A stretch of 52,411 nt of DNA, from NCBI GenBank assembly GCA_003427395.1, contig BFEA01000045.1, forward strand, positions 4,097,421 through 4,149,831, in the 5' to 3' direction. The position numbers and the translations under genes were made by a program. The stretch is from Chara braunii (Eukaryota; Plantae; Charophyceae). The notes under the pieces were generated by a model. It was not told the DNA's origin. It did not search any database and saw only the letters and a list, made by a program, of their open reading frames with translations. Of the stretch, positions 4,550-52,411 are shown in pieces (positions within the stretch are counted from its first letter, which is position 1; each line of letters begins with the position of its first letter).

Positions 4550-6038
<1,489 letters not shown>

Positions 6039-7250: not shown

Positions 7251-8404
7251 TATGTCAGGACAAGAAGAAAAGAAAGGGAAAAGAAGTGCTTCAGCGGGAG
7301 TGACTCCAAATGTCCTAAAAAGAAGCAGAATAAGAGGCAAGTACCGCGGGGAAAAAAAAATAGAAAAGAAGAAGCACCACGTGGCCTCGGTTCATTAATA
7401 ACCTCCTCAGGGAGAAACTGCCAATGGCATGAGTTGATCTCAGCCGGACGACACCATAAGCACCAAAGGGTGTGCTTATTCGCAGGAGAGAAAAAGAAGG
7501 ACTGAGAGTAGGGGAAATATGAGTTTCAGTAAGATAACTTAGGACATAGGCAAGAAACTCCTTCAACAAAAGGAGGAAGACTGACAGACGACACAGGGTA
7601 GGTAGAAGCTAAGGAGTTAGACTTTTGGATGTTGATCCCATAACTCACAGACCAGATCTAAGGGCTTGACCCTTGGATATCAATAAGTGAAAAATCGAGT
7701 GGGGTGTTGAATCTTTGTTGACCTGTGTGTGTGCAGGTCTCTGTTGTGATCTACTCCAATTGAAGGAGAAGTCCTACAAAGAGGACTCAATTTTTATGTT
7801 ATCTCTCGATAACAGGTCGGTCGTTGCCGATTCAACTTTTCCCCTTTTGACTTGATATCCACGTCTAAAGTCAAACCCTGTGGTCAGTAAAACTATCACC
7901 TGTGGTCATTGCCTAAGTGGTCCTAGTCACTCTCAAGGGTCCTTTGAAGAAAAGTGAGGGGGTTGGGCTTACGTCTCAGGAAAGATAAAGCTGGCATACA
8001 TGGTTTGGGAAGTGAGGGACAGGTGTGGATTGATGGTTGACGTCGTTAGTGCATGCATGACATGTCAACTGTCTTTGCATCATTCTGTGTAGGTTTGTTA
8101 TGTTCGTGGGTTTAGATTGAACTGAACCTGATCTGTTGAAGAGTCTTCGATGCACAACACTTGTGAAAGTGGGAAGGGTTCTCGGCAGTAATACCTCCAT
8201 ATTCATTTATCAGTCTTATATAACTTCTATGTTATCTGATGTTCAGTCATATGTTGAGTAAAATAAAATGTTTTTGGTAGTGACATGATTTGATTGGTAC
8301 TTTGATCGTAGTGGTTAGAAGAATAATATGTTTTTGAAGCAGAAGCGAAAATAGGCGGCCTTCTGAAAGTTCGACCTGAATATCTAACGGGTCAGTTTTA
8401 TGCG

Positions 8405-8672
8405 TCTTACCTCGCGTACCCCGTTTTGTGCTACATCGATTGAAAAAACGTCATCGGTCGACCTACCTCTACAAAGGCATGTAAAAGTCTTCGCATGTGG
8501 GTCGGTAGCTCAGCAGGGATACGCCTACCTGAGGGTGGTGACAGCCCCTTGGGTAGTGGTAAGCTGTACCTCGTGATGTCCCGACCTGTCACAGGGCGTT
8601 GTAAGAGGAATAGCACGAGCGCACGGTCGGAGTGGTGACTGGTTCTTCTCAGACAAAACATCCTGCGTGACA
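8405..8672 (-). mobile_element. LTR-retrotransposon terminal segment (family B), likely LTR 5' end TGTCACG on -
   Basis: Similar to 33908-34174 (ACCTCGCGTACCCC, TCGGTAGCTC.GC.GGGATAC, AGGGTGGTGACA.CCCCTTGG). Similarity in both copies ends at ATCCTGCGT. Confidence 0.6.
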
Positions 8673-15900: not shown

Positions 15901-17109
15901 GAACACCACACTTCACTTTCAGTCTACCACCCAGTTAGTAGCGCAATACAGAATCCGCCTCTCTGAGGCGGCGAGGCCAGCGCCAACCACTAAGATGAAG
16001 AACAAGACTAGCGGTGGAGTCCTCAGTGCCGCTGAAAAATCTCTAACAAAGAAGGCTACACCTATGGCTACAGCGCCATTGTCTCTTTTACGCAGGTATC
16101 TCTGACAAAGTAGCAGCAGTAGTGGTCCACCCACAAACAACTATGTAAAGCCTCCTGATAGCCGAGACAATCGCTGACACTCTCAGGGGTGAGTGCTCAG
16201 AGGACGCCCCAACTATGGCGAGCTCTGGAAGTCTGGCTATGACCGTCGTTCACAACGAGGGACTCAGGATGCCGCATGCAGTCAATCGTCAACTACGCTA
16301 AGTTTGGTGTTTGTTGGGGTTGTGAAGATGACTGTTTTGGTCTATTTTTTGTCTGTTCAAGTAGTGTCATTTTGAACTTTTCCCAGAGTCCGAACAGAAT
16401 TGTGTGTGTTCGGACCTGAGGACCACAGTAGTGTTTTTGGTCAAGGTCTGCCTATGCCAAGTTTGGTGTTTGTTGGGGTCTTGGAGATGACTGTTTTGAC
16501 CAACCCTGAAAATCTTGAAAAATCTTGAAAACTAAAAAGGGCGAATTTTGCATGAAAATACACTTTTGCCTTCGGGTTTAGGGCCCCTTTGATTTTTTTT
16601 ATTTTTTTTTGTGGTTTACTTGGTGTCCACTCTATGAACTGATGACAACTCTGGCTTAAACGGTGTAAGGCGTTTGTTATAATGACCCTGAAAAAAACTT
16701 GAGAAATTAGGGGTCGGTTAACTGCTTCTCCCAGATCCGTGTTCGTCCGTAGTGGAGCAGTTCCTGCTGCATTAGCAGGATTACCTGGACGTTTGGTAGG
16801 GACTCGGACAGGACGTTTTGAGGCCAAGCCAATGGTCTGGGACTTGGGCCTTCGAGCAGGGTTGTCGATCAGATACTAGATCCGACAGTCCTGATCAAAG
16901 GCCGAGTGTTGCGCAACCAGGCCCAGCGGTATACAGCTGGGCCAGCCCTCTGGACCAGGGTACTTAGTAATTGTCAATTTGTGGGCGTTACACTGTTGGA
17001 GCAGTGTCAGGACCTTGAGCGTTGTAGTAGAGTAGAGGTAGACACTGGGAGTGAGAGCGGAGGGGAGTGGGGAGCGGCGACCATAGCCGCGAGGTTCGAC
17101 GAACTTACC

Positions 17110-17142
17110 TGGGCGCCATAGCTGGTTCACCCTCCAACGACC
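17110..17142 (-). other. Candidate 33-bp exon of an unidentified minus-strand transcript
   Basis: The minus strand reads tctctgtgctgcag|GTCGTTGGAGGGTGAACCAGCTATGGCGCCCAG|gtaagt, with a strong acceptor and donor and a length divisible by 3. Confidence 0.3.
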
Positions 17143-17286
17143 TGCAGCACAGAGACCACACGCCAGCTAGTTAGTCGTGGCATCAACATTCGTGCAGGTG
17201 AGACAGAGGAGGGATTGTTGTTTCTTCTTCTTCCTGTCTCCACCCTCCATATCCACCACTCTTCTTCTCCTTATTCCACTTCCGCA

Positions 17287-17317
<31 letters not shown>

Positions 17318-17476
17318 AAAAAAAAAAAGAGAGAGGGGCTATGTGGGGCACTGCCCCCGGGACATGACTCGACGCTTTGGAGAAAGACATTGGTCGGACT
17401 ATTGGCAGGGGGACTACTTTTGGACGACATGACTTATTCTCCTCTTCCTACTCCTCCATCCACGCCATCATCCATT

Positions 17477-17479
<3 letters not shown>

Positions 17480-17563
<84 letters not shown>
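17480..17563. repeat. (GA)n microsatellite
   Basis: Directly visible. Confidence 0.95.
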
Positions 17564-17567
<4 letters not shown>

Positions 17568-18372
17568 TTACACTTTCTCAATGAGTCAGCACTGGGAACT
17601 CTTGGCTGCTATTGCTTTTGTTTCTCACAATTTGTTATTCACTCAGTCCTTGCCAGTCTGTTGTGTATTTCTTTCTTTCATAGACAAGGGTCACATGATT
17701 CATATTTTATGCCCAACACACCCTTCAAGTCTATTGTTTCAGATAAACTTTTTGTAATCATTGATTACTTCGTTTTGCTATTTATCTTGTTTTGATGTCT
17801 GACTATTCATTTTTCCTCATCTCTTTACTTCTCATGGGCAGATTTTGTTTCACAGAAAGTCATTGTTCCAAGTTGTTGTTTCGACATTTTTCCAGATGGT
17901 AAGATTTACCCTTTTCAATTTTCATTTCCCCGTATGGTGTGCAAAAAAATTGTTAATCATACAACTCAAACTGGTGATTCTTTTGTTTTAAACCATTTGT
18001 ACACCAAAGGCTCAATGCACGAGGCTAAATTTGAATTTGACCGAGCCTAAAAAACAAAGCATATATTTTCCGTTTTCTTTCTCGTTGATTTTTTTTTGGG
18101 GTGGGAGGGAAGGGGAAGTGCGTTGGAATCACACCCAACGTTCAGAATGGGCAACTTTAGCAGTTCTCGAAATGGAGCAAAACAATTTACCCTTAATCTG
18201 CCAAGGTCCACTACGGGTAATGACTGGGGCAGTTTTAAACCCTCGCTAAACTTTCACATTTCATTGCTTATTTCAAACTAAAAGTGTACCACAGCTGCAA
18301 TTTTTTTTTTTTTTTTTTCTACTCGTTTTTTTCGTCGTGTCTGCGTGACAGGGTGTTCTATCTCCCCATGTG

Positions 18373-18521
18373 GAAGGGAGATGCACAGGCAGGGAGCCCA
18401 GAAGGCAGATGCACGGGCAGAGAGTCGAGAAGGCAGATGCAAGGGCAGAGAGTCAAGAAGGCAGATGCACAAGTAGAGCGCCCATAAGGCAGATGCACGA
18501 ACAGAGAGCCCAGAAGGCAGC
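18373..18521. repeat. 28-bp minisatellite, about 5 copies
   Basis: GAAGGCAGATGCACGGGCAGAGAGYCVA units. Confidence 0.9.
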
Positions 18522-18899
18522 AAGTAGACATACACGCCTACAGTTATGGGAAAACGGGAGTGGTGACATAGGATAACGTCACATAATGTTGCAATGAAAA
18601 ACCCAAAATTTGAAGTGAAAGAGGAGTTGTGTACAAGGGAAGAGAACTGTGTGTTTGTCACTTTTGTTTTTCATATTTTTTGCCAACTAATATGCATTTC
18701 TTGTTTTTGCTTGCTTTTGTTCTCTGTATGTTTGACAGGTTTAACTGATTCGCTGTTAATAGAGAATTCGTGAGAATTTCTGGGCTCATGGACGATTTGC
18801 AGTGCACGACCGTTGTTGACTACCTGAGATGTAATACTACGACTTCTATGGGGGAATTTTTTGTCATAGAACTTACACAGGAAATCAAGTACAGTCTCA

Positions 18900-18911
18900 A
18901 GGGAGAGAGAG

Positions 18912-18964
<53 letters not shown>

Positions 18965-19230
18965 GTTGTTCGTAAATTCATAGTCACTAAGTTCAAGTGT
19001 AATATAGGTGCTTACATGATCACAGAACAATGACATTTTTGTCGTACATATATAGAGATAGAAGGCGAAAGAGAAAGAGAGAGAGAGACAGACACACAGA
19101 GAAAGAGAAAGAGAGAGACGGACATACACAGAGAGAGAGACGAGGTTGTTCGTAACTTCATAGTCACTAAGTACAATTGTAGTAGAGGTGGTCACATGAT
19201 CGCAAAACTATTATATTTTTGTTGTATTCA
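18900..19230. repeat. ~180-bp tandem duplication (GA tract plus GTTGTTCGTAA.TTCATAGTCACTAAGT block)
   Basis: The block starts at ~18965 and ~19145. Confidence 0.8.
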
Positions 19231-19365
19231 TGAAGCCCGGTTAGAAGTCATCATTTCTATATGAAGAATTTTTTTTCCGAATTTTAACTCCTTTACTGTG
19301 TATTTTGTTTTGTAATTCCACTTTTAACGTTGCTCAAGGATGCTTTGTCTCTTGCTTCTGCAATT

Positions 19366-19428
<63 letters not shown>

Positions 19429-20073
19429 NNNNNNNNNNNNNNNNNNNNNNNNNNNNNNNNNNNNNNNNNNNNNNNNNNNNNNNNNNNNNNNNNNNNNNNN
19501 NNNNNNNNNNNNNNNNNNNNNNNNNNNNNNNNNNNNNNNNNNNNNNNNNNNNNNNNNNNNNNNNNNNNNNNNNNNNNNNNNNNNNNNNNNNNNNNNNNNN
19601 NNNNNNNNNNNNNNNNNNNNNNNNNNNNNNNNNNNNNNNNNNNNNNNNNNNNNNNNNNNNNNNNNNNNNNNNNNNNNNNNNNNNNNNNNNNNNNNNNNNN
19701 NNNNNNNNNNNNNNNNNNNNNNNNNNNNNNNNNNNNNNNNNNNNNNNNNNNNNNNNNNNNNNNNNNNNNNNNNNNNNNNNNNNNNNNNNNNNNNNNNNNN
19801 NNNNNNNNNNNNNNNNNNNNNNNNNNNNNNNNNNNNNNNNNNNNNNNNNNNNNNNNNNNNNNNNNNNNNNNNNNNNNNNNNNNNNNNNNNNNNNNNNNNN
19901 NNNNNNNNNNNNNNNNNNNNNNNNNNNNNNNNNNNNNNNNNNNNNNNNNNNNNNNNNNNNNNNNNNNNNNNNNNNNNNNNNNNNNNNNNNNNNNNNNNNN
20001 NNNNNNNNNNNNNNNNNNNNNNNNNNNNNNNNNNNNNNNNNNNNNNNNNNNNNNNNNNNNNNNNNNNNNNNNN
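19429..20073. other. Assembly gap (645 N)
   Basis: N run following a CT microsatellite. Confidence 1.
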
Positions 20074-20970
20074 CCCCCGGCCCACCCTATTAGCCTATGG
20101 GCCAAGACTAGGCACCAAACTGGTCCGGTACGACCACGTACACGGGCCCCAAAATCGGATACGAGAAAACACGTACACGTCACGTACGCTCGCTCGTACA
20201 TACGCGCATGCACCTTCGCGGAGCCCGTGTACGTATACGTCGTACAAAATATATATATATCGGAACGGGCCGAACGCCCGAACGTAGAGGACCCCTTGGG
20301 ATCCGTTCGGGTCGAACGCGGACCAAAACAAAACAACAACCTGCAAAAAAATTATGTTATGAAGAAAAATAAAATAAACACCATTTGTTTGAGCATTACA
20401 TCCAAATTCTTTGCCAGATTGGAAATAAAAATAAAAAACGGAAATACGAATAAAAATAAGAAAAAATAAAAAGAGAATTAAAATTATTAAGTGCGCGAGT
20501 ATGTTTTCAACACCGCCATCTTTGGCGATTTTTTATTTTTCTGGGGCATAGAAAAATGCTCTGAAAATTTGCATATGTGTAATTCACATAATACAAAACG
20601 TATGAAAAAAATTAAAAAAAATAGTACAAGGTTTTAGGCGGCGAAATAAAGTGAAAACAGAAAGTAAAAAGGAAAACAATCAGTGGGCGAGCACGTTTTG
20701 ACAATGCCGCCTTTATAAATTTTTCATTTTTTTTTTTGCTTAGCAAAATAACTCTAAAATTTGTAGGCATGTACCTCACATTATAGACAACTTACAAAAA
20801 AAAACTCTGAAAAAATATATATATATCCTTAGGCATCGAAATCATTTTTGGCGGGGGCCGAACCCCTCCAGGTTCGAGCCCCGAAAGGGACCCCGAACGC
20901 CCGTAAGTACGGAGGTTGCACCGGGGGCCTCCGTACGTACGGGCTGGTGACCCTGTATATATATCGACAA
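20074..20970. mobile_element. Probable DNA-transposon subterminal region (CGTAC/CCGAAC-rich, ~195-bp internal duplication)
   Basis: 20490-20620 resembles 20683-20810. Short repeated motifs are dense and lead straight into the palindromic satellite. Confidence 0.4.
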
Positions 20971-20971
20971 A

Positions 20972-23032
20972 GTTGAACACCGAATTCTCGAAGTGCGTTT
21001 TCGGTACACCGAAACCACTTCGGGATATAATGTAGTTGATAAAGAAAATCGACTAAGTTAAACACCGAAATCCCGAAGTGCGTTTTCGGTACCGAAACGC
21101 CAAAAGCACTACGGGATATGATGTATTAAACACTGAAATCCCGAAGTGCATTTTCGGTACAGAAACACCGAAAGCACTTCGAGACATGATGTAGTAGATA
21201 ATAGAAAATCGACTAAGTTAAACACTAAAATCCCGAAGTGCGTTTTCAGTACCGAAACACCGAAAGCACTTCGGGATATAGTGTAGTTGATAAAGAAAAT
21301 CGACTAAGTTAAACACCGAAATCCCAAAGTGCGTTTTCGGTACCGAAACACCGAAAGCACTACGGGATATGATGTATTAAAAACCGAAATCCCGAAGTGC
21401 ATTTTCGGTACCGAAACACCGAAAGCACTTCGTGACATGATATAGTACATAATAGAAAATAGACTAAGTTAAACACCGAAATCCCGATGTGCGTTTTCGG
21501 TACCGAAACACTGAAAGCACTTCGGGATATGATGCAGTTGATAAAGAAAATCGACTAAGTTAAACACCGAAACCCGAAGTGCGTTTTCGGTACCGAAACA
21601 CCGAAAGCACTACGAGATATGATGTATTAATCACCGAAACCCCGAAGTGCGTTTTCGGTATCGATACACCGAAACTCCGAAGTGCGTTTTCCATATCGAT
21701 ACACCGAAACCACTTCAGGATATGATGTAGTTGATAAAGAAAATCGACTAGGTTAAACATCGAAATCCCGAAGTGCGGTACCGAAACACCGAAAGCACTA
21801 CGTGATATGCTTTATTAAACTCCGAAATCCCGAAGTGCGTTTTCGGTACTGAAACACCAAAAGCACTTTACGACATGAAGTAGTGGATAATATGAAATCG
21901 ACTAAGTTAAACACCAAAATCCCGAAGTGCGTTTTCGGTACCGAAACACCGAAAGCACTTCGGGATATGATGTAGTTGATAAAGAAAATCGACTAAGTTA
22001 AACACCGAAACCCCGAAGTGCGTTTTCAGTACCGAAACACCAAAACAATTTTGTGATATGATGTAGTTGATAAAAAAAATCGACTAAGTTAAACACTGAA
22101 GTCCCGAAGTGCGTTTCGGTACTGAAATACCGAAAGCACTACGGGATATGATGTATTAAACACGGAAATTTTGAAGTGCATTTTCAGTACCGAAACACCG
22201 AAAGCACTTCGGGACATGATGTCGTAGATAATAGAAAATCGACCAAATTAAACACCGAAATCCCAAAGTGCATTTTCGGTACCGAAACACCGAAAGCACT
22301 TCGGGATATAATGTAGTTGATAAAGAAAATCGACTAAGTTAGACACCGAAATCCCGAAGTGCGTTTTCGGTACCGAAACACCGAAAACACTACGGGATAT
22401 GATGTATTAAACACCAAAATCCCGAAGTGCATTTTCGGTACCGAAACACCAAAAACACTTCGGGACATGAGGTAGTAGATAATAGAAAATCGACTAAGTT
22501 AAACACCGAAATCCCGAAATACGTTTTCGGTACCGAAGCATCGAAAACACTACGGGATATGATGTATTAAACATCAAAATCTCGAAGTGCGTTTTCGGTA
22601 CCGAAACGTCGAAAGCACTTCGGGACATGATATAGTAGATAATAGAAAATCGACGAAGTTAAACATCAAAATCCCGAAGTGTGTTTTCGGTACCGAAACA
22701 CAGAAACCACTTCGGGATATGATGTAGTTGATAAAGAAAATCGACTAAGTTAAACACCGAAGTTCCGAAGTGCATTTTCGGTACCGAAACACCGAAAGCA
22801 CTACAGGATATGATGTATTAAACACCGAAATTTCGAAGTGATAAAGAAAATCGACTAAGTTAAACACCGAAATCCCGAAGTGCGTTTTTTGTATTGAAAC
22901 ACCAAAAACACTACAGGATATGATGTATTAAAGACCGAAATCCCAAAGTGCGTTTTCAGTACCGGAACAGTGAAAGCACTTCGGGATATGATGTACTACA
23001 TGATCGAAAATTGACTAAGTTAAACACCGAAG
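20972..23032. repeat. Palindromic satellite of ~25 monomers (68/91/92 bp) with a ~251-bp trimeric higher-order repeat
   Basis: Common core AACACCGAAATCCCGAAGTGCGTTTTCGGTACCGAAACACCGAAAGCACT with three tail types that cycle. For example, monomers start at 21061, 21129, 21221 and 21312. Confidence 0.95.
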
Positions 23033-23689
23033 AGTATTTTGATGAAATTTGTGAGTTTGCGTTCGGTATACAATTTATAAAACTCATTTCGATATAGATT
23101 CGGTGAAATATATAGCCTCCATTAACCATCTTTCCCCGTAGACCCATCGCTTTAACAATCCGTACCTAAACCAACTGGGCTAGCTCCTTCCCTGCTCAGA
23201 AGGAGAAGATCAGGCATATGTAGGTGTTTAGGCTCAACTAATTAGTATGTCGATCCCAAGGCTCGTTTTGAAGGTCAAATTAAGCCAACTTCGACCGCCA
23301 TAGCCTTCTATGAAAGGAACCATGTCCTTTTTGGTTGCCCTGGCCGCACGACCGGTCCTATAATAGTCTCTAACCCTCTTCACGGATCTATCGACGGTTC
23401 CAATATCCGTAGATCCTATCTACTTAACCTATTATACAGTATGGTATAATGCCGCGACGTCGGGCGCCCTTTTACCTATTGATCATCCTTCCGACCTTTG
23501 CAGTTGGAGGTTTCTAACCCTTAATATTTATTTGACTTTGTGTGCACCACAATGGTACGCGCGACGTAGAGCTTGAAGTGTTCTTACTTATTACTGAAAT
23601 TTTTTTCCTTCGTGATAGTCGATGTCGGTGTTCTGTTAAATAAAAAAAATATGGCTAAACGCCTTTGTAAGGGTATTTGGTCTGATAAC

Positions 23690-24082
23690 GAGTTTGTTGA
23701 ATCTACGAGTGTTTCACTGGAGTTTCACGGGAGAGCAATGTTTAGTGATGTGGCAGTGAGAGTCGTCGCTGAAAGCACATGTTTTGCATCAGTGGTCATA
23801 TCTTTTGTTGTGAACACATGCATGAACGACAGTGTGGGGGCCCACAAGTGCGAATTTGTACAATGGTGCAAAGAGGTCAACAACAAAAGGCAACACATAA
23901 TAGGTTGCAAGAAATTGAAAAGGGAGAAATTGAATGAACATCAACACAGTAGCGTCATCTCGATTGACACTACAGTAGACCAAGTCCATATTGTTCCAGT
24001 TTTCTCTAAACCAAAATGGGGATCAAAGCAGCATGAAAAACAACGTGATGACTGTTTTTATTTGAACAAGTATATATCGTAG
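23690..24082 (+). pseudogene. C-terminal fragment of a Plavaka-type (CACTA-related) transposase
   Basis: FHGRAMFSDVAV...FASVVISF...CEFVQW...GCKKLK...SVISIDTTVDQVHIVPVF...FYLNKYI* follows the C-terminal pattern of Plavaka transposases (F.G..R.D.V.V; A.V.WF; VI.LD.I.R.VHL.P.F; FY.NKY). Recognised from motifs only; no upstream catalytic domain is seen. Confidence 0.6.
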
Positions 24083-24379
24083 AAAAAACAAATTAAAAAT
24101 GATTAACTTTGCTATTAGAGAAATACACATTCTGAGAAACTCATGTTGTTTCGTTATTGACTTGAGAGATAAAAAGAGAGAGAGGTTGGTTATTGCGTAC
24201 ATATCAAAGATTTGATGTCCCCGTTTACCATATAATTGTCACACAGTAGTGAACTTTTGGGTGATCTTTAGTTTGACATGCGGTTTTCTCCACTTTGTAA
24301 GGTTGGTTGTGTTTGAGATGATTTTTCACGGATACATGACAGATCGTGAAACAAATGTTATTTTTTGTTCCTCTATACT

Positions 24380-24399
24380 TCTTTCTCTCTTTCTCTCTC

Positions 24400-24477
<78 letters not shown>

Positions 24478-24495
24478 ACACACACACACACACAT
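24380..24495. repeat. (CT)n(CA)n microsatellite
   Basis: Directly visible. Confidence 0.95.
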
Positions 24496-25071
24496 TCTCT
24501 CAAGTATTTTATACAAATTATCTCTCCCTCTCAAATATTTTATAAAAACTCTTTCATGTAGCCAATAACATTACAATTCATGTGTATCATGGACAAGAAG
24601 ACAAACTTACGACCTTGAATACCGTTTGGCAAAGAACGACACCAAACATAAGTGACAGTGTCACCCGACAGGACACCATCCCTTCAAACATAACAACAAC
24701 ATCGTGAAGAGGAAGACGGTGTAGGTAACAAAAGCTAAGTGAACATAACAGAGTCACGGAAAAGCAACACAGGCGGTAGTGAGAAATACTCGTATATGGG
24801 TACAGAAATGACAATCACTTTCACAACAACAAATAAGGATGAAGACTTATGTAGAGAGGTCGCATGTGAACCGTTGTCTTCATTGACTAGCGAGAGGTCA
24901 ATGAAGAGGTGGAAGAATCTGTTGAAGGACCCTTAGTACGCTGACATGTATGAAATAATGTCATCAAGTGAAGTAAAGTCTCCCCAACCGATGGCCGAAG
25001 AGTCCTCCAGCATTTATGGAAACGTGAAAGTGGGGGACATGGCCAGAACGTGAGAAAACAAGACAGACATA

Positions 25072-25290
25072 TGTGATGAGGAGCAATTGTTCCCCTTCAC
25101 GTAGAAATCAAGGAGACACGTCATTCCCGTAATGAAGTCTGACATTGCACGATTGGGCGGGAACGGATGGTTGAACGTCAACATTATCGATATTTATTTA
25201 CAGTCTGTGTATGAAAAACATTCGTCGACAAGGGACAATGCAACAGTTTATGTCTGTACAATTTTCTGGCACCCCCAAGTTGTTGGTGCA
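25072..25290 (+). pseudogene. Ulp1/SENP (peptidase C48) N-terminal catalytic-domain fragment
   Basis: CDEEQLFPFT*KSRRHVIPVMKSDIARLGGNGWLNVNIIDIYLQ...VYVCTIFW matches the SENP pattern D..RL....WLND.II.FYL...v.if.tfF. It has an in-frame stop and no catalytic His/Cys was found. Confidence 0.65.
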
Positions 25291-27399
25291 AGGTTGGTTA
25301 CTGCGTGCCACTTCATGTCTTGACTGACATGTCGGAGAAATGGTGTCACGCACTAGTGAACCCTGCTTGTAGAAGGGTAACAGGCCATATTCTTGACGGC
25401 CCCGCATGCATTCCTTCATAGAATGAAAATACAGAGAAAAAAATAAACGTTGGCTACTGCGTGTCACTTCATAAATTCGGTCAATTTCCACGAAAAACAA
25501 AATGTGCATGCCACATTCTTCCCTCTCTCTCTTTGTCCCCCCCCGCCCTCGCCCTTTCGCCACCCCGCCATGTTTTTCAACAACGTCATCAAAACAGAAC
25601 CTACAAAATTCAGTGTGTATTAGCTGTCAGAAACAGACGAAGACTCGAAGATTGAGAAACATGAAAGCATAGTGTATTGTGGTGCAGTTGTGAATAGAGG
25701 TCCGTAGGTTTTGTAATTGCGTCATTGCTTCCCTCCTTCCGCAGGTCACGATTTGTGTGTCAATGTCCAGTGTCTATCATATTTTCGCACACGCACAACG
25801 AACCCATGTGTTGTGTCCTGCTCAATGACAAGGACCAACCAGATCCTCATCCTGCCATAATGATGTACGTTGTTTTGTCGCATTCTTTTCAGCAACAGAC
25901 AAAACTATTGTATTGACATTGGAAAAAAACACAACAGCTCGAGCGACAAAAAGTGATTTTTTTTTCCGAACAGGAAGTGCAATGTTCAACAATTAGTCAA
26001 CACACCTCCAACGACTTTTCAACATGTTTTAACAAATGAATCAACAATTGAACACAGTATAATCTGTTCGCGATATCTGTGATCAGGGTTGAATTCCTTT
26101 ACTTCTGATAGACCACATGACACCCTCATTGCCAAACAGTTTATCAACACAGTTCCAACGGTTTATAAATGGGGCTCACATGTGATAATCCTGTTATAAA
26201 AATTGCCACAATTGTTCTATTGCTCGGCGAAGGCGTACTTAAAGGGAGTTACCGCGTATAAAATTCGGGTTTTCCCCACTTGATTGGTAAAAGTGCGTCT
26301 TTAGAGTGGGGAGTGATGTGTGTGGCAGCTATGAGTAGAACCAGGTCTCTTCGTGTGGTGTGTGGCGGTGTTCGGCAGTCGCAGGTTTGGCCGGTAAACG
26401 AAGATGTGTCAGTGGAGTGTTTCAGTACAGCCACGCACATGGTGGAACCGTTTATGTGGTATTTTGCAGCAGCTAATCTCGGCTCTAGGCCTATGAATAT
26501 TGGTTACAGTATTGGACTTTCAGCAGGCAGGTTCACGAATCAAGGCCAGCACCCAAGGGCGAGGGAGCGAAGGACTGCGTACGAAGGACTGAGGGGTGGC
26601 GGTCCCGACCGAGAACCCAATCGGTGAGTGCAGAACGTACCAACAACTCCATTTATCCCCTCGTCAATCCCGTTTTCTGTACAACCTCATATTTCATTTT
26701 TATTTCTTACCTCTCTTTATTGTTTTATTTATTTTTATTTCTATTTTGATCCCGTTTCAAGACGGGTACCGAGGGTTGAGCAGTTAGATTATGATATCTC
26801 AAGACCGTTGCATTATGAGGTAGTCCTTCAAGTCAGGATGTCTGTTAAAAAACAGAACAATACAGAGACGACTAACATGGCCCCTACAACTAGTTCTGAG
26901 GCATGTCATGCAACCAACTTACGTCCATAAACTGTTGTAGCATAAATATGAGTACGAACTCTACCGCAGCAAATGAGAGAAATGTTATCGATTTGAGCTG
27001 CTTGCGGCCATTGATATCAAGGTCGCCCCCCCCCTCCTCTTTTCTTACAGAGTCTGTCAACATGGGGTGCGGTGGCCGGTACTGCAGTGACGAGCTCGTC
27101 GTGACAATCAAAGATTTTGAGGAAGGCCTTTTTTTGCTGACCATCGATGTATCTAGTCGTGTTCTTACGAGATAATCATTCTCGTTATGCACATTTGGGA
27201 AGTAGAGAGAGTCGGGGCACATAGAAAAGTGGAGGGGCTCGCATGTGTGAGCACGCGATTGGATCGAGAGGGTGTGTATATGAGAGAGAGAAAGGGGAGG
27301 AAGTACATACCTTGGGTGATGTATTCTTCCCTTGTTCTAGCGAAAGATTCATCCTCATTTTTGCTTATTTTGTGGGACATATGTTGAAATTATAACGAT

Positions 27400-29400
27400 A
27401 CGGAGAAGATTAAGGTTACAGAAGTAGCATCCGGCCCCACAACCACTCACTGAAACTGTTCAGCAACTCCAACTATTATAAGGGAAACTTCGGAGGGAAC
27501 CAACTCTGGAGGGTTCGATTAGTCTTTCGTCCCTATATCCGACAGACTATTTGCACGTCTGTTTTGTTGACAGCCTCCGCCAAGGTTCCTCCAGCCTTGC
27601 GCTGCTCAGACATAATTCACCACCTCTTGAGTCATAATAGGCATGCTCTCATTCAAACCTCCCACAACAGATCGACGGTGCACCAGCCACTCAGGTTTCT
27701 CCTGCCCCGTGGGCTTAATACCCACCGGCCCGCTTGCACGTTGGCTCCTCTGTCCATGTATCAAAACGGCAGAATAAGGGAATATCGACCCAGAGATGTC
27801 ACCATTGAACTGAACGGCCCTTGATAAGTATGAATTGCAATATTTCACTCGTCTACGTTCAGTGGAGTTCAAACTCGGGTCTGTATTTCATCAGTTCATG
27901 CGTGTACCGACCAACCAATCGGTTGCATTACTAGTCTTGGAACTGGTGTCGGGTCTTTTGCAGAGGTTGCTTCTCAAGACTACGATTTAGGGAGCACACG
28001 GCTCAAATGCACGTGACTGGCACACTCGACTAGGTTACCTCTCCAACTTTACGGACGTCTCAAATACTAAGGTCGAATGTCGTTGCCTTGGGCATCATGA
28101 TCGGAGTGACAGATCTATGTAATTTTAAATGCAGTATTTTATTCATCTGCTTTCAAAGGGAGTTTAAACTCATGTCTGTGTTTCAACAGTTCGAAGTTTA
28201 ACCAGCGAGGATCGACCCAGAGGGCTCGTAGTACCTTTATTTACAGCAGCAGCCTAGCAATAGGTGCGCAGCGCTGGTCTGGTTGTGTACACAGCCAGCT
28301 GACGGGAAGGAGCCTAAATCGATGGACTCGAAAGAGCACATCGCATACTTGAGCAGTACGACTCAGTCGGCGGTCGGGTGAGACTAACTAAGCAACCAAC
28401 GTTGGTTCCATCACGGTCCCAGTACCAGCACTGGTACCGATCCCAAAATAAATAATAATAATACAAAAATGAACAAAAACTTTGAATCTTGTCAAGAGGG
28501 AGAGGGATCGTTAACGAAACCAAGGGGGATACCCCTAAACGCTTCTTCATCGCTGTCCACAGGCCTTGATCCCCGTGCCTCCCGTACCTGCTGCATGAAA
28601 GCCCAACATCGTAACCAATAGCACTAGGCCCAAGGTTAGCACTAATAGCTGCAAGAATTCATATAGATGGGTATCGTATCGTGTGTAGGCCTACCAAAAT
28701 GCCCCAAGGCCAGACCTTGGCCTACCGGCTAGACTTATGGTCACCACTTCCCTATGCTTGCCGCACAAAAGGTCGAACCTTGTTCATAACCACCACACAC
28801 ACCATTCATTATGCAGAGGTCTTTCCACAAATAGTAAAATCTGTCGTGCAAATGGCCACAATTTAAAAATCATATCCCCAACGGCAAAAGCTTCAACTTT
28901 CACCTCGGCCGCATACTTTTTCAAGGTCGAGGGTGACTCCTTCTAACTCGTAGGCTTACACAGACCAAGGCGCCATGCTAAACACCACGCTACACGGACT
29001 CCAAAAATCCTTCCAAAAGATAAGCAAATTAACCACCTCAAGATCGTGGCCCCGACAATTAAATTTTGACGTTAGCCACGACCGATGCTGCCTCGGCATG
29101 AACACACGTACCATAAACAAACGTATCAACCAAAGGAAATATCATTTAGTCCTAATTTTAATCGAGAACAATAATTTTAGTCGACACATGTGCCAACTTT
29201 GTAATATCAACAAGGAAAAGCGTGCGTGTCTTTAAACTGCTCGCTCATACACTCCCTATTTTTCTCATGAACACCAAGTTCATAACAACTGCAAACTGGT
29301 CACGATTTGCGCGACACAACCAAATTTCGAACCAAAATTCATTTATGACACTTACAAAAACCAAGGCGGATACTCTTGTAAGGATATTTGCATCCACAAC
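27400..29400. repeat. Copy 1 of a ~2-kb diverged direct repeat containing LSU-derived sequence
   Basis: Collinear anchors with copy 2: 27630/34420, 27765/34545, 28120/34790, 29100-29330/35500-35730 and 29370/35795. Confidence 0.65.
27467..27782 (-). pseudogene. Degenerate nuclear LSU (26S/28S) rRNA-derived fragment
   Basis: The + strand reads AGGGAAACTTCGGAGGGAACCAACT..GGTTCGATTAGTCTTTCGTCCCTATA..ATTTGCACGTC..GCTCAGACATAATTCACCA..GTCCATGTATCAAAACGG. This is the reverse complement of the conserved LSU segment between the LR5 and LR3 primer sites, with many substitutions. Confidence 0.85.
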
Positions 29401-46341: not shown

Positions 46342-47272
46342 TGCTCTCCTTTGCTGCTCGACGGGGACTTGGGTGCCGTGCTTGGATTCGTGCTCATCAT
46401 TGATCCGTGGATCCGTGCTTCGATTCGTGCTCTGTCCATTGGTGCTCATCGTGTTCTNTCCATTGGTGCTCATNGTNTTCTCTCCATCGTGCTCATCGAG
46501 GATCCGTGCTTTTTTTTGGAGCACGACCACGTGCTCATCGTGGATCGTGCTTTTCGTCACCTGCTCATCGTGGATCTGTGCTTTTGGTCACGTGCGGACC
46601 GTGGATCCGTGCTTTTCGTGCTCATCATCGTGGATTCGTGCGGGAACTTTGGTGCATGATAATGTGCTCATCTTCGATCCGTGCTTTTGGTGGTCTGTGC
46701 TCATCGTGCTCGGTGCTCATCGTGGATACGTGCTTTTCATGCTCATCGTCGATCCGTGCTTTTCGTGCCACGTGCTTTTCATGCTCATCGTAGATCCGTG
46801 CTTTTCGTGCCATCGTGGATACGTGCTTTTCATGCTCATCGGCGATCCGTGCTTTTCATGCTGATCATTGATCCGTGCTTTTCGTGCTCATCGTTGATAC
46901 GTGCTTTTCATGCTCATCATTGATCCGTGCTTTTTGTGCTCATCGTTGATACGTGCTTTTCGTACTCATCATCGATCCGTGCTTTTCATGCTCGGTGATC
47001 ACCGTGGATGCGTGCTCATCGTGAATCCATCCTGACGTGCTCATCGTGAATCCATCCACCGGTGATCACCGTGGATGCGTGCTTTTCATGCTCGGTGCTC
47101 ATCGTGAATCCATCCAGACGTGCTCATCATTGATCCGTGATTTTCATGCTCATCCAGACGTGGTCACCGTGGATGCGTGCTCACCGTGGATGCGTGCTTA
47201 CCGTGGATGCGTGCTCACCGTGGATGCGTGCTCATGGTGAATCCATCCAGACGTGCTTTTGGTGCTCATCAT
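45984..47272 (+). mobile_element. Helitron-like non-autonomous element: duplicated 5' end, long palindrome and internal minisatellite
   Basis: A|TCTACATCTACATCTACACCTACTATAAGAA start (plant Helitron-type 5' TC), repeated 60 bp later. A 50-bp-arm palindrome spans 46148-46249 and a GTGCTCATCGTGGATCCGTGCTTTTC array spans ~46376-47272. No clear 3' hairpin-CTAG was found. Confidence 0.55.
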
Positions 47273-50719: not shown

Positions 50720-52411
50720 GGCCCAATGCAGTTGGGGCCCGCGCAGTACAGTTGTGCCTCTTTCGTCCAGGCCTGCGTCCAGATTCAGGTAGTGGACTGA
50801 TTTCCCATTGGCATTTTCGGCCTCTATTTCCAGTATGCAATGTCGGCCTGACGTTTATGTGCCCAGGGCCTAACCAACTGCAAAGGCCCTGGGATATCTG
50901 TATTTGCAGAAATCCGAAACTCGGTGCACTCCAACCAACTGGCGTGCTGCAACTGTATGGACCCCACTTCGTGAAATGTTGGCACAGAGGGCTCTTGTTG
51001 ATTTGCTGGCCCGCCTTCACTTAGGGTGGGCACTAGGCTTGCTGGGGCCTTAGCCCAGAACATGTACATCATGGCAAGGCCCCTTCTTGAGGGCTCAATC
51101 CTCACACAAGGTGACACGAGAACTGTTCATGGGTGTGGATTGTGGTCGAGTCCTTTGATGTGTTGTGTTTTTTACATCGTACAGTTGCATTTTTCACGAT
51201 TGTGTCAGATGCGGGTGCGTTTTTGAGAGGGCGAAGGTTAGCTTGCGAGAGGTGAAAGCAAATATTTTGCTGAGCCTGCAAGAGGTGAAAGCAAATATTT
51301 TGCTGAGCCTGCAAGAGGTGAAAGCAAATATTTTGCTGAGCCTGCTAGAGATGAAGGGAAAAAAAAAATAAAAAAATAAAAAAAATGAACGTAGTAAACG
51401 TACGTATTGCGATGGTGTCAGAATGTGTGTATATTTCCTAGAGAAAGTTTGAACCTCCGAAGATGCTTCATTTTGGGTTTTCGCCGTGTGACGTGAAGAC
51501 GTATGATGTGTTTCTGAATTGTTTAGATCGCACGGTGGAATTTGTCTGAGAAAGGTCGTGTCAGAATGTGTCAGATTGGTGTTGGTTTCTCAGAGGGCGA
51601 AGGTTCGAGCCTCGTAACAGGCTTTCTTTTGGGCAGTGTAGCTTGAATTCTTAGTCTTTGCGTGTATCTTTCCGACGGGGCGAAGGGCCGAATCTCCCAG
51701 ATTCTTCCATTTGGGTTTTGGGCATGTAACGTGAAAATGTACGATGGGTTTCTGAATTGTTTAGATCGCAGTGGGATTTGTCTGTGAGAGGTCGTGTCAG
51801 AATGTGTCAGATCGGTCTTGGTTTTCGTGAGGGCGAGGGTTCGAGCTTCCGAGCGGGGTTTGTTTTAGGCGGTGTGACGTGAATTCTTTGTCTTTTTCAA
51901 GACATTGGATGGGTTTGTCAATCGTTTAGATCGCACGGTGGGTTTTGTTTGTGAATTGTAATGCATTTGTAATCCGCAACCTTGGAGTGTTACGTAGACG
52001 GTGACGGTTCAAACCTTGGGTACAAGTGTGAGGATTGAGCCCTCAAGAAGGGGCCTTGCCATGATGCACATGTTCTGGGCTAAGGCCCCAACAAGCCTAG
52101 TGCCCGCCCTAAGTGAAGGCGGGCCAGCAAATCAACAAGAGCCCGCTGTGCTAACATTTCACGAAGTGGGGTCCATACAGTTGCAGCACGCCAGTTGGTT
52201 GGAGTGCACCGAGTCTCGGATTTCAGCAAATGCTGAAAACCCAGGGCCTCTGAGTTAGTTAGGCCCTGGGCACTTGAACGTGAGGCCGACAATGCATGCT
52301 GGGTATAGAGGCCGAAAATGCCAAAGGGAAATCGGCCCACTATCTGAATCTGGCCGCAGGCCTTGATGAAAGAGGCACAACTGCATTGCCCCGGGGCCCA
52401 ACTGTATCGGG
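50720..52411. mobile_element. Long inverted repeat (foldback or long-TIR element), right arm truncated by the window end
   Basis: The reverse complement of 50720-51108 matches 52026-52411 closely. The ~917-bp spacer carries a 33-bp triple repeat (51249-51345) and ~245-bp direct repeats. Confidence 0.9.

Follow-up and report, generated by a model that had tools for sequence, protein, structure and literature searches.

A probable dead fragment of a giant Plavaka-type transposon beside an apparently separate palindromic satellite in Chara braunii

We analysed a 52,411-nucleotide (nt) stretch of the charophyte alga Chara braunii (contig BFEA01000045.1; hereafter the window), in which a preliminary description had placed, at positions 20074-25330, a Plavaka-type transposon relic carrying a Ulp1/SENP protease and a 2-kb palindromic subterminal array. 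Our analysis indicates that positions 23693-26222 are probably the dead remnant of a Plavaka-type giant transposon (23-24 kb) of C. braunii, cut at its 5' side and internally deleted, and that the palindromic satellite to its left is a separate repeat. This reading draws on homologies, gene order, breakpoints, a terminus and the absence of the satellite from other copies of the family, all of which were observed directly. The family was represented by eight further loci (L001-L008), with L001 being the locus of protein GBG85192.1 on contig BFEA01000509.1; comparisons were made with single open reading frames (ORFs) or by tblastn of intact proteins against DNA. As read from these comparisons, the relic would retain the final 128 transposase codons, a spacer hairpin that has decayed, codons 31-170 of Ulp1, a further 1.5 hairpins and the 3' end, arranged as follows.

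23693-24082, + strand: C-terminal piece of a Plavaka-type transposase that corresponds to residues 801-928 of 929 and the stop codon; its reading frame is uninterrupted and the DDE core is missing.
24186-24262, no strand assigned: degenerate family hairpin in the spacer between transposase and Ulp1; window 24164-24287 corresponds to L001 19557-19680 (74%).
24380-24494, no strand assigned: (TC)n(CA)n microsatellite in the same spacer, found with Tandem Repeats Finder (TRF); L001 has (GA)26 and (CT)23 at the matching place.
24745-25291, + strand: Ulp1/C48 pseudogene fragment, equivalent to residues 31-170 of 376, interrupted by stops in frame at 24934, 25051 and 25102 and broken off ahead of the catalytic His, Asp and Cys.
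25292-25466, no strand assigned: family hairpin and lone arm from a motif scan, with 19-nt arms at 25292-25310 (+) and 25344-25362 (-) and the lone arm at 25448-25466.
25982-26222, + strand: 3' subterminal block and 3' terminus, ending ...TTCTATTG, with 69-73% identity to L002, L004 and L006.

The element in L001 provided the reference for these assignments. Its 929-residue transposase ORF runs uninterrupted from 16551 to 19340, ends in HIVPRF...FFLNKYIL followed by a stop codon, and matches the Pfam Plavaka model at residues 157-484 (1.9e-25). On the same strand, 620 nt downstream, lies an uninterrupted 376-residue C48 ORF (19959-21089), which carries HW, DS and DCG motifs and matches Pfam Peptidase_C48 at residues 131-339 (7.9e-15). 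The family therefore includes an intact element, the existence of which the preliminary description had raised as a question. The order (transposase, then C48), the shared strand and the spacing are fixed across the seven loci L001-L007, with both ORFs free of stops in L001 only, which bears out the earlier proposal that transposase and protease belong to one large DNA-transposon family. In addition, all 40 proteins retrieved with the L001 transposase in a word-index search came from C. braunii, and many of these gene models fuse Plavaka with Histone or Peptidase_C48 domains.

The window ORF that ends in HIVPVF...FYLNKYI and a stop codon (23573-24082) was found as described, and its assignment to Plavaka proved right. 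By tblastn, 23693-24076 aligns without a stop to residues 801-928 of the L001 transposase (53% identity over 128 residues, E = 5e-37). An exhaustive HMMER search with the 170-residue open frame against 1.84 billion representative proteins gave only three matches or clusters. The best was a 137-residue transcript ORF from Chara vulgaris (E = 1.5e-26), accompanied by residues 1627-1731 of C. braunii GBG85192.1 (E = 1.3e-22; 51% identity over residues 1627-1730), a 2125-residue protein with Pfam Histone (439-557) and Plavaka (983-1310) domains. The third was a more distant 122-residue protein from an ENA contig (P0003), which ends ...FYVNKYVDHHAF; C-terminal endings of this type are typical of fungal Plavaka and KDZ transposases. 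The C-terminal motifs HIVP.F and FYLNKY are common to the window ORF and this more distant protein, and the residues left of 23693 are unrelated to the family proteins (alignment A5). The left break of the relic is sharp, with homology to seven family loci beginning at 23693-23727. We also noted that C. vulgaris transcripts (P0001 and P0004, 137-138 residues) cover the C-terminal domain of the transposase and are 45-46% identical to the window ORF; the Plavaka family is present and transcribed in this second Chara species.

The Ulp1/C48 call for the downstream fragment was also right. The DIARL...WLNVNIIDIYL piece is present as reported, in an open frame at 25105-25320, and the wider stretch 24868-25287 aligns to residues 31-170 of the L001 C48 ORF with three in-frame stops (tblastn, 49% identity over 140 residues, E = 6e-39); the protein P0020 aligns to the window from 24745. 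The fragment spans only about the first 40 residues of the C48 domain. The catalytic triad is absent, as homology stops at residue 170 and the HW, DS and DCG motifs of L001 lie further on. When the 72-residue piece was compared with all PDB sequences (phmmer), the top four matches were chains of the SENP2 catalytic domain (E = 0.15), and these align to the window piece at the start of that domain. As a side observation, the Ulp1 protein is far more diverged between the L001-L007 lineages (40-52% at the amino-acid level) than the transposase (62-69%).

Profile searches with Pfam, which had been proposed as a check on both genes, came out blank: there was no Plavaka match for the window ORF or among the 92 open pieces taken from either strand between 23.2 and 30.1 kb, no match of 25105-25320 to Peptidase_C48 (PF02902) even at E = 10, and no transposase or C48 match among 108 open pieces of the surroundings. 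The blank on the window pieces arises because the preserved fragments fall beyond the modelled domains or only just reach into them. The DDE core (PF18759), for example, occupies residues 157-484 in L001 and is absent from the relic, which starts at residue 801. We therefore do not count the blank profile result against the gene calls, as the relic lacks the modelled cores. The window holds a fragment of a Plavaka member, not a functional member.

Beyond its genes, the family is marked by a hairpin of its own, which lies in intergenic spacers and consists of two inverted 19-nt arms near GGTTGGCTACTGCGTGCCA, 53 nt apart from start to start; the arms read GGTTGRCTACTGCGKGCCA and enclose a loop of ~34 nt. 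All six assembled transposase-C48 spacers (window, L001, L003, L004, L006 and L007) contain such a hairpin, and a four-unit array of it lies upstream of the H3-like gene in L001 (7713-8148) and L007 (2097-2484). Assembly gaps (runs of N) often begin right after these arrays (L001 8149, L007 2514), and the arrays are probably longer than assembled. The family hairpins of the window fold no better than shuffled sequences; the L001 unit folds at z -3.9. The hairpin at 25292, in a stretch (25290-25377) with 71% identity to L001 24128-24216, marks the left edge of the internal deletion and forms its joint. From the start of C48 to the 3' block the distance is 0.7 kb in the window, compared with 4.05-4.25 kb in L001-L004, and therefore ~3.5 kb has been lost, including the catalytic half of C48 and the ORF that follows it.

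The 3' block itself, ~250 nt long, is conserved in the window, L001, L002, L003, L004 and L006, and the right border previously given at 25330 was thus too short, as family homology runs to 26222. In a five-copy alignment (A3), similarity ends abruptly after ...TTTTTCTGTTG; the window reads ...TTGTTCTATTG, ending at 26222. The reverse complement, CAACAGAAAAA(A/T)TGTGG, opens the elements in L001 (1916), L006 (4376) and an inverted copy in L008 (4606), and window 26222-26198 is matched, in inverted orientation and at 88%, by the 25 nt that open the L006 element at its 5' end; the L008 5' end likewise gives an inverted match. Because matching inverted ends stand at abrupt stops of homology, CAACAG/CTGTTG are the termini of the family. 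They read CAACAG.../...CTGTTG in L001 and L003-L008, and the window 3' end reads ...CTATTG. The window 3' end and the family ends together have the form 5'-CA..TG-3' with short terminal inverted repeats (TIRs), and no TIR partner for the 3' end was found within the window. The L006 element is flanked by GA on both sides, a possible 2-bp target duplication (chance 1 in 16), and none was seen at L001. The L001 element is also flanked by a 240-nt inverted repeat (1629-1866 and 24893-25131, 81-84% identity). We considered this 166-240-nt repeat as long TIRs and rejected the idea, as it is absent from the other loci and homology ends inside it, at CAACAG/CTGTTG; a foldback or palindromic repeat probably received the L001 element in its loop.

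With gaps counted, the L001 element is 23.0 kb long and the L006 element 24.3 kb. As judged from these two copies, an intact element would be bounded by inverted termini of 16-25 nt (5'-CAACAG...CTGTTG-3') and would carry an H3-like gene, the 929-residue Plavaka DDE transposase, the 376-residue Ulp1/C48 gene 0.6-1.2 kb downstream of it on the same strand, and then a further ORF. The DDE transposase would be expected to excise and reinsert the element at its CAACAG/CTGTTG ends. The conserved intergenic hairpins are candidate cis-elements, which may serve as binding sites for an element-encoded protein or as transcription punctuation, and the analogy with the KIU/VANC proteins of VANDAL elements makes Ulp1 and the H3-like protein candidate effectors on the chromatin of the element itself.

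The relic is inactive, having no catalytic transposase, a protease stub with stops and a single terminus. It cannot encode transposition and, with one terminus gone, cannot be mobilised either. Across the whole window, neither a 5' terminus nor the 5' subterminal block, a segment that is 74-76% conserved among L001, L006 and L008, nor any further family homology was found. Nucleotide identity between the relic and the other copies is 63-71%, and 63-70% in the transposase tail; L001, the L002-L004 group and L005 are about as distant from one another as each is from the relic. The relic is therefore a further deep lineage of the family, and not a decayed copy of L001, of the L002-L004 group or of L005.

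To the left of the relic, the studied region holds three further features.

20074-20962, no strand assigned: left segment, starting at an assembly gap, with an AT-rich core between two GC-rich blocks.
20963-23031, + strand: satellite array of 24 monomers of three types (91, 68 and 92 nt), forming a 251-nt higher-order repeat.
23032-23692, no strand assigned: spacer between satellite and relic; the array fades by ~23100, and the remainder is unique, with no blastn match to the family loci or elsewhere in the window.

The palindromic higher-order satellite of the preliminary description was borne out both by TRF (score 2012, 8.1 copies of a 251-nt period, with sub-periods at 68, 91 and 160 nt) and by a motif scan over 20963-23031, in which the monomers follow one another at 68/92/91 nt in repeating order with some local irregularities. 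The array thus has distinct monomer types in a fixed order within a larger unit, as a higher-order repeat does. Every monomer contains a 48-nt quasi-palindrome (for example, window 21919-21966) centred on the perfect 14-mer TTTCGGTACCGAAA, and folding of single-stranded DNA gave -22.5 kcal/mol for the long monomer (z -8.2) and -14.2 kcal/mol for the short one (z -6.0) relative to shuffles. This palindrome has no relation to the family hairpin, copies of which are present in the relic itself, and the satellite ends 660 nt left of the relic's 5' break. The left segment, which had been taken for a repeat-dense terminal-like segment, turned out to be weakly repetitive, with a few motifs of 15-25 nt that occur two or three times each; it has no match in the eight family loci and no terminus motif. 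CCGAA/TTCGG is about five-fold denser here (6.8 per kb) than in the rest of the window (1.4 per kb), and on account of this enrichment the segment looks like a frayed satellite edge and not a transposon end. It does not belong to the relic and is probably a degenerate margin of the satellite.

Neither the array nor either of its flanks has a match in L001-L007. L008 contains a related array (7338-8608) in the opposite orientation, with gaps on both sides, which is built of 92-nt monomers and has no 68-nt type. Its consensus is 74% like the long monomer of the window, with palindromic cores that are ~92% alike and linkers that are quite different; the L008 linker has a C-run and an A-run. This array lies 2.7 kb beyond the 5' terminus (4606) of the inverted family copy and 3.8 kb before a co-linear truncated copy (homology from 12406), with a hAT ORF (DUF659, Dimer_Tnp_hAT) in between. 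We tried the satellite as a subterminal array of this hAT element and rejected it, as the satellite motif is not enriched around the hAT ORF. Separately, we noted that at L008 10001-12541 a hAT transposase ORF (DUF659, then Dimer_Tnp_hAT) is joined to the H3-like gene of the Plavaka copy in one gene model (P0031), which reflects either a hAT insertion or a lineage-specific fusion. Taken as a whole, the satellite is a dispersed repeat family of ~91-nt monomers on a conserved palindromic core, and not a recurrent part of the transposon. Its 251-nt higher-order repeat would arise by unequal exchange, and its core may persist via concerted evolution or some candidate binding function. Satellite and relic presumably stand side by side because both accumulate in the same repeat-rich DNA.

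The preliminary description had instead made the satellite the element's transposase-binding subterminal array, and this part was not supported: the array is absent from seven of the eight loci, lies outside the element terminus in L008 and has no 5' terminus beside it in the window, within the limits set by the gaps. Of the co-occurrence that had been proposed as a check, the linkage of transposase and protease within shared termini stands, and that of the satellite does not. Several observations nevertheless weigh against regarding the satellite as separate and the relic as fully delimited. In two of the nine loci, an array of this satellite or of a close relative is only a few kb away from family copies, and each time it is located 5' of the nearest copy and shares its orientation. 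There are gaps in all loci, several of them directly at hairpin arrays; one of the two 645-N gaps in the window (19429-20073, immediately left of the studied region) is 0.9 kb left of the array and could hide a 5' terminus or more arrays. Furthermore, no copy of the relic's own lineage is among the compared loci. The 5'-sided, co-oriented arrays in two of nine loci would be explained if the satellite core were an array of cis-elements that the Plavaka family, or its protein, targets, seeds or uses, a reading that we regard as decidedly improbable.

Spelled out, the model of the preliminary description makes the satellite the 5' subterminal array of a non-autonomous deletion derivative, with the palindromes as sites for an element-encoded protein. 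A 5' terminus in the gap would be followed by a terminal segment and then the array, and beyond a deletion joint would come the tail of the transposase, the Ulp1 stub and the 3' terminus. It could draw on the same 5'-sided, co-oriented placement in the window and L008, on intact copies that carry 5' hairpin arrays followed by assembly gaps (L001 7713-8148, L007 2097-2484), on the tandem inverted-repeat arrays that lie beside an accessory gene in red-algal giant Plavaka elements (bioRxiv 10.1101/2025.02.11.637652), and on the gap 19429-20073, which could conceal the terminus (CAACAGAAAAATTGTGG). However, the window has neither that terminus nor the 5' subterminal block conserved in L001, L006 and L008, 20074-23692 matches nothing in the eight loci except the L008 satellite, and the placement outside the terminus in L008 and absence from the other seven loci count here as well. 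As the relic's lineage also uses the family hairpin motif and not the satellite palindrome, we consider a deletion derivative quite unlikely.

The sharp break of homology within the transposase ORF could alternatively mean that the satellite is the cargo or arm of another, foldback-like mobile element, and that its insertion into a full-length Plavaka copy produced the truncation at 23693; the unlinked arrays, with ~92% alike cores and different linkers, show that the repeat has spread. Yet no inverted repeats connect the flanks of the array, no remainder of the Plavaka copy lies leftward in the window, no transposase domain was found nearby (Pfam, open pieces), and the surroundings of the L008 hAT ORF are not enriched in the satellite motif, all of which make this origin unlikely. 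It seems scarcely credible that the ORF at 23573-24082 (143-169 codons) is a short gene still in use, in which the transposase's C-terminal domain has been domesticated. Its frame is open over 129 homologous codons, against three stops in 140 codons of the C48 stretch, and the C. vulgaris transcripts of 137-138 residues cover the same domain; at the C48 stop rate, however, such an open frame would arise by chance with an estimated probability of ~0.06. The C. vulgaris ORFs line up with a Met inside the complete transposase and are thus probably incomplete element transcripts, the window residues upstream of 23693 show no relation to these ORFs, the exhaustive HMMER search gave no closer homologue, and the setting is a decayed relic. 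The reading of a dead, truncated Plavaka-type fragment next to an independent satellite stays the likeliest.

Elsewhere in the window, (TC)n and (CA)n microsatellites are abundant. To the right of the relic, a fragment of eukaryotic large-subunit (LSU) rRNA lies at 27500-27744 on the - strand (Rfam, 82 bits, model positions 675-954). Some 25 tandem copies of a unit with a period of 26 nt, like CATCGTTGATCCGTGCTTTTCATGCT, occupy 46490-47260, and an inverted repeat of ~370 nt (50738-51107 and 52026-52394; arms 0.9 kb apart, 95% identical over 227 nt and 87% over 142 nt) forms a foldback-like element at the window's end. Finally, a repeat at 4612-5803, unrelated to the Plavaka family and with several tandem-like copies in the window, also occurs at L008 5213-5682 (68-91% identity).

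Plavaka is reported to fall in the CMC/CMCT clade, according to Iyer et al. in 2014. Plavaka elements were once known from fungi only and are now found across Archaeplastida, including streptophyte algae (PMC13519894). The full-length Chara relatives resemble them in matching the whole Pfam Plavaka model, the window shares C-terminal motifs with the Plavaka-like protein P0003, and the ends are of the CA...TG form, with 5'-CA...TG-3' termini being described for the CMCT clade (PMC12730594). Fungal elements, by contrast, end in TGT..ACA (PlavakaA) or CATCA..TGATG (PlavakaB) (PMC12730594), whereas the Chara termini are CAACAG...CTGTTG in a multigene element of 23-24 kb, of which the window copy lacks the DDE core. 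These termini, and a Pfam family that is Plavaka and not Tnp2, also place the element outside CACTA/En-Spm, whose termini are CACTA. The red-algal giant Plavaka elements (17-19 kb, accessory genes PAG1-3, tandem inverted-repeat arrays; bioRxiv 10.1101/2025.02.11.637652) are similar in their giant size, in accessory genes that plausibly act on chromatin and in internal inverted-repeat arrays. They differ in their cargo, which is a DNA methylase-SET protein and a ParB-like/2OG-oxygenase instead of the H3-like and Ulp1/C48 proteins of Chara, and the Chara repeats are single intergenic hairpins plus one four-unit array.

Ulp1 domains have long been known in grapevine and rice CACTA elements and in Mutator-like elements (MULEs) (PMC2528002). 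These CACTA-ULP elements and Ulp1-bearing MULEs (Kaonashi, and the KIU-VANC system of VANDAL) share with the Chara family a predicted Ulp1/C48 protease as cargo, and CACTA falls in the same broad transposase clade. They differ in having Tnp2/En-Spm or MuDR transposases, in occurring in land plants and in lacking an H3-like gene. VANDALs that carry KIU recognise short motifs within non-coding DNA of their own (PMC13317346), which offers a possible parallel to the Chara hairpins. The satellite, for its part, resembles alpha-satellite-like higher-order repeats in having monomer types in a fixed 91/68/92-nt order (~8 x 251 nt), and is unlike them in that the window array is only 2 kb long, has strong palindromic cores and shows no sign of a centromere location, with the L008 array being made of plain 92-nt units. 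As streptophyte Plavaka (PMC13519894), giant Plavaka (bioRxiv 10.1101/2025.02.11.637652) and CACTA-ULP (PMC2528002) elements are all published, the earlier suggestion that such a combination may be undescribed was overstated; among the papers searched, we found none that describes Ulp1 or an H3-like protein as Plavaka cargo, or elements of this sort in Chara.

The locus itself is an ordinary relic of an interesting transposon family. It contributes little beyond one more deep lineage and the confirmation of the 3' terminus and of the fixed hairpin position, and its hairpin-forming satellite is probably not the element's binding-site array and should therefore stay out of models of the family. 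The wider family is a streptophyte Plavaka of 23-24 kb that has kept Ulp1, an H3-like gene and an intergenic hairpin across lineages at ~65% nucleotide identity. As such, it adds to an emerging picture of giant algal transposons carrying chromatin-directed cargo, and it offers a testable analogue of the anti-silencing KIU/VANC system of VANDAL elements.

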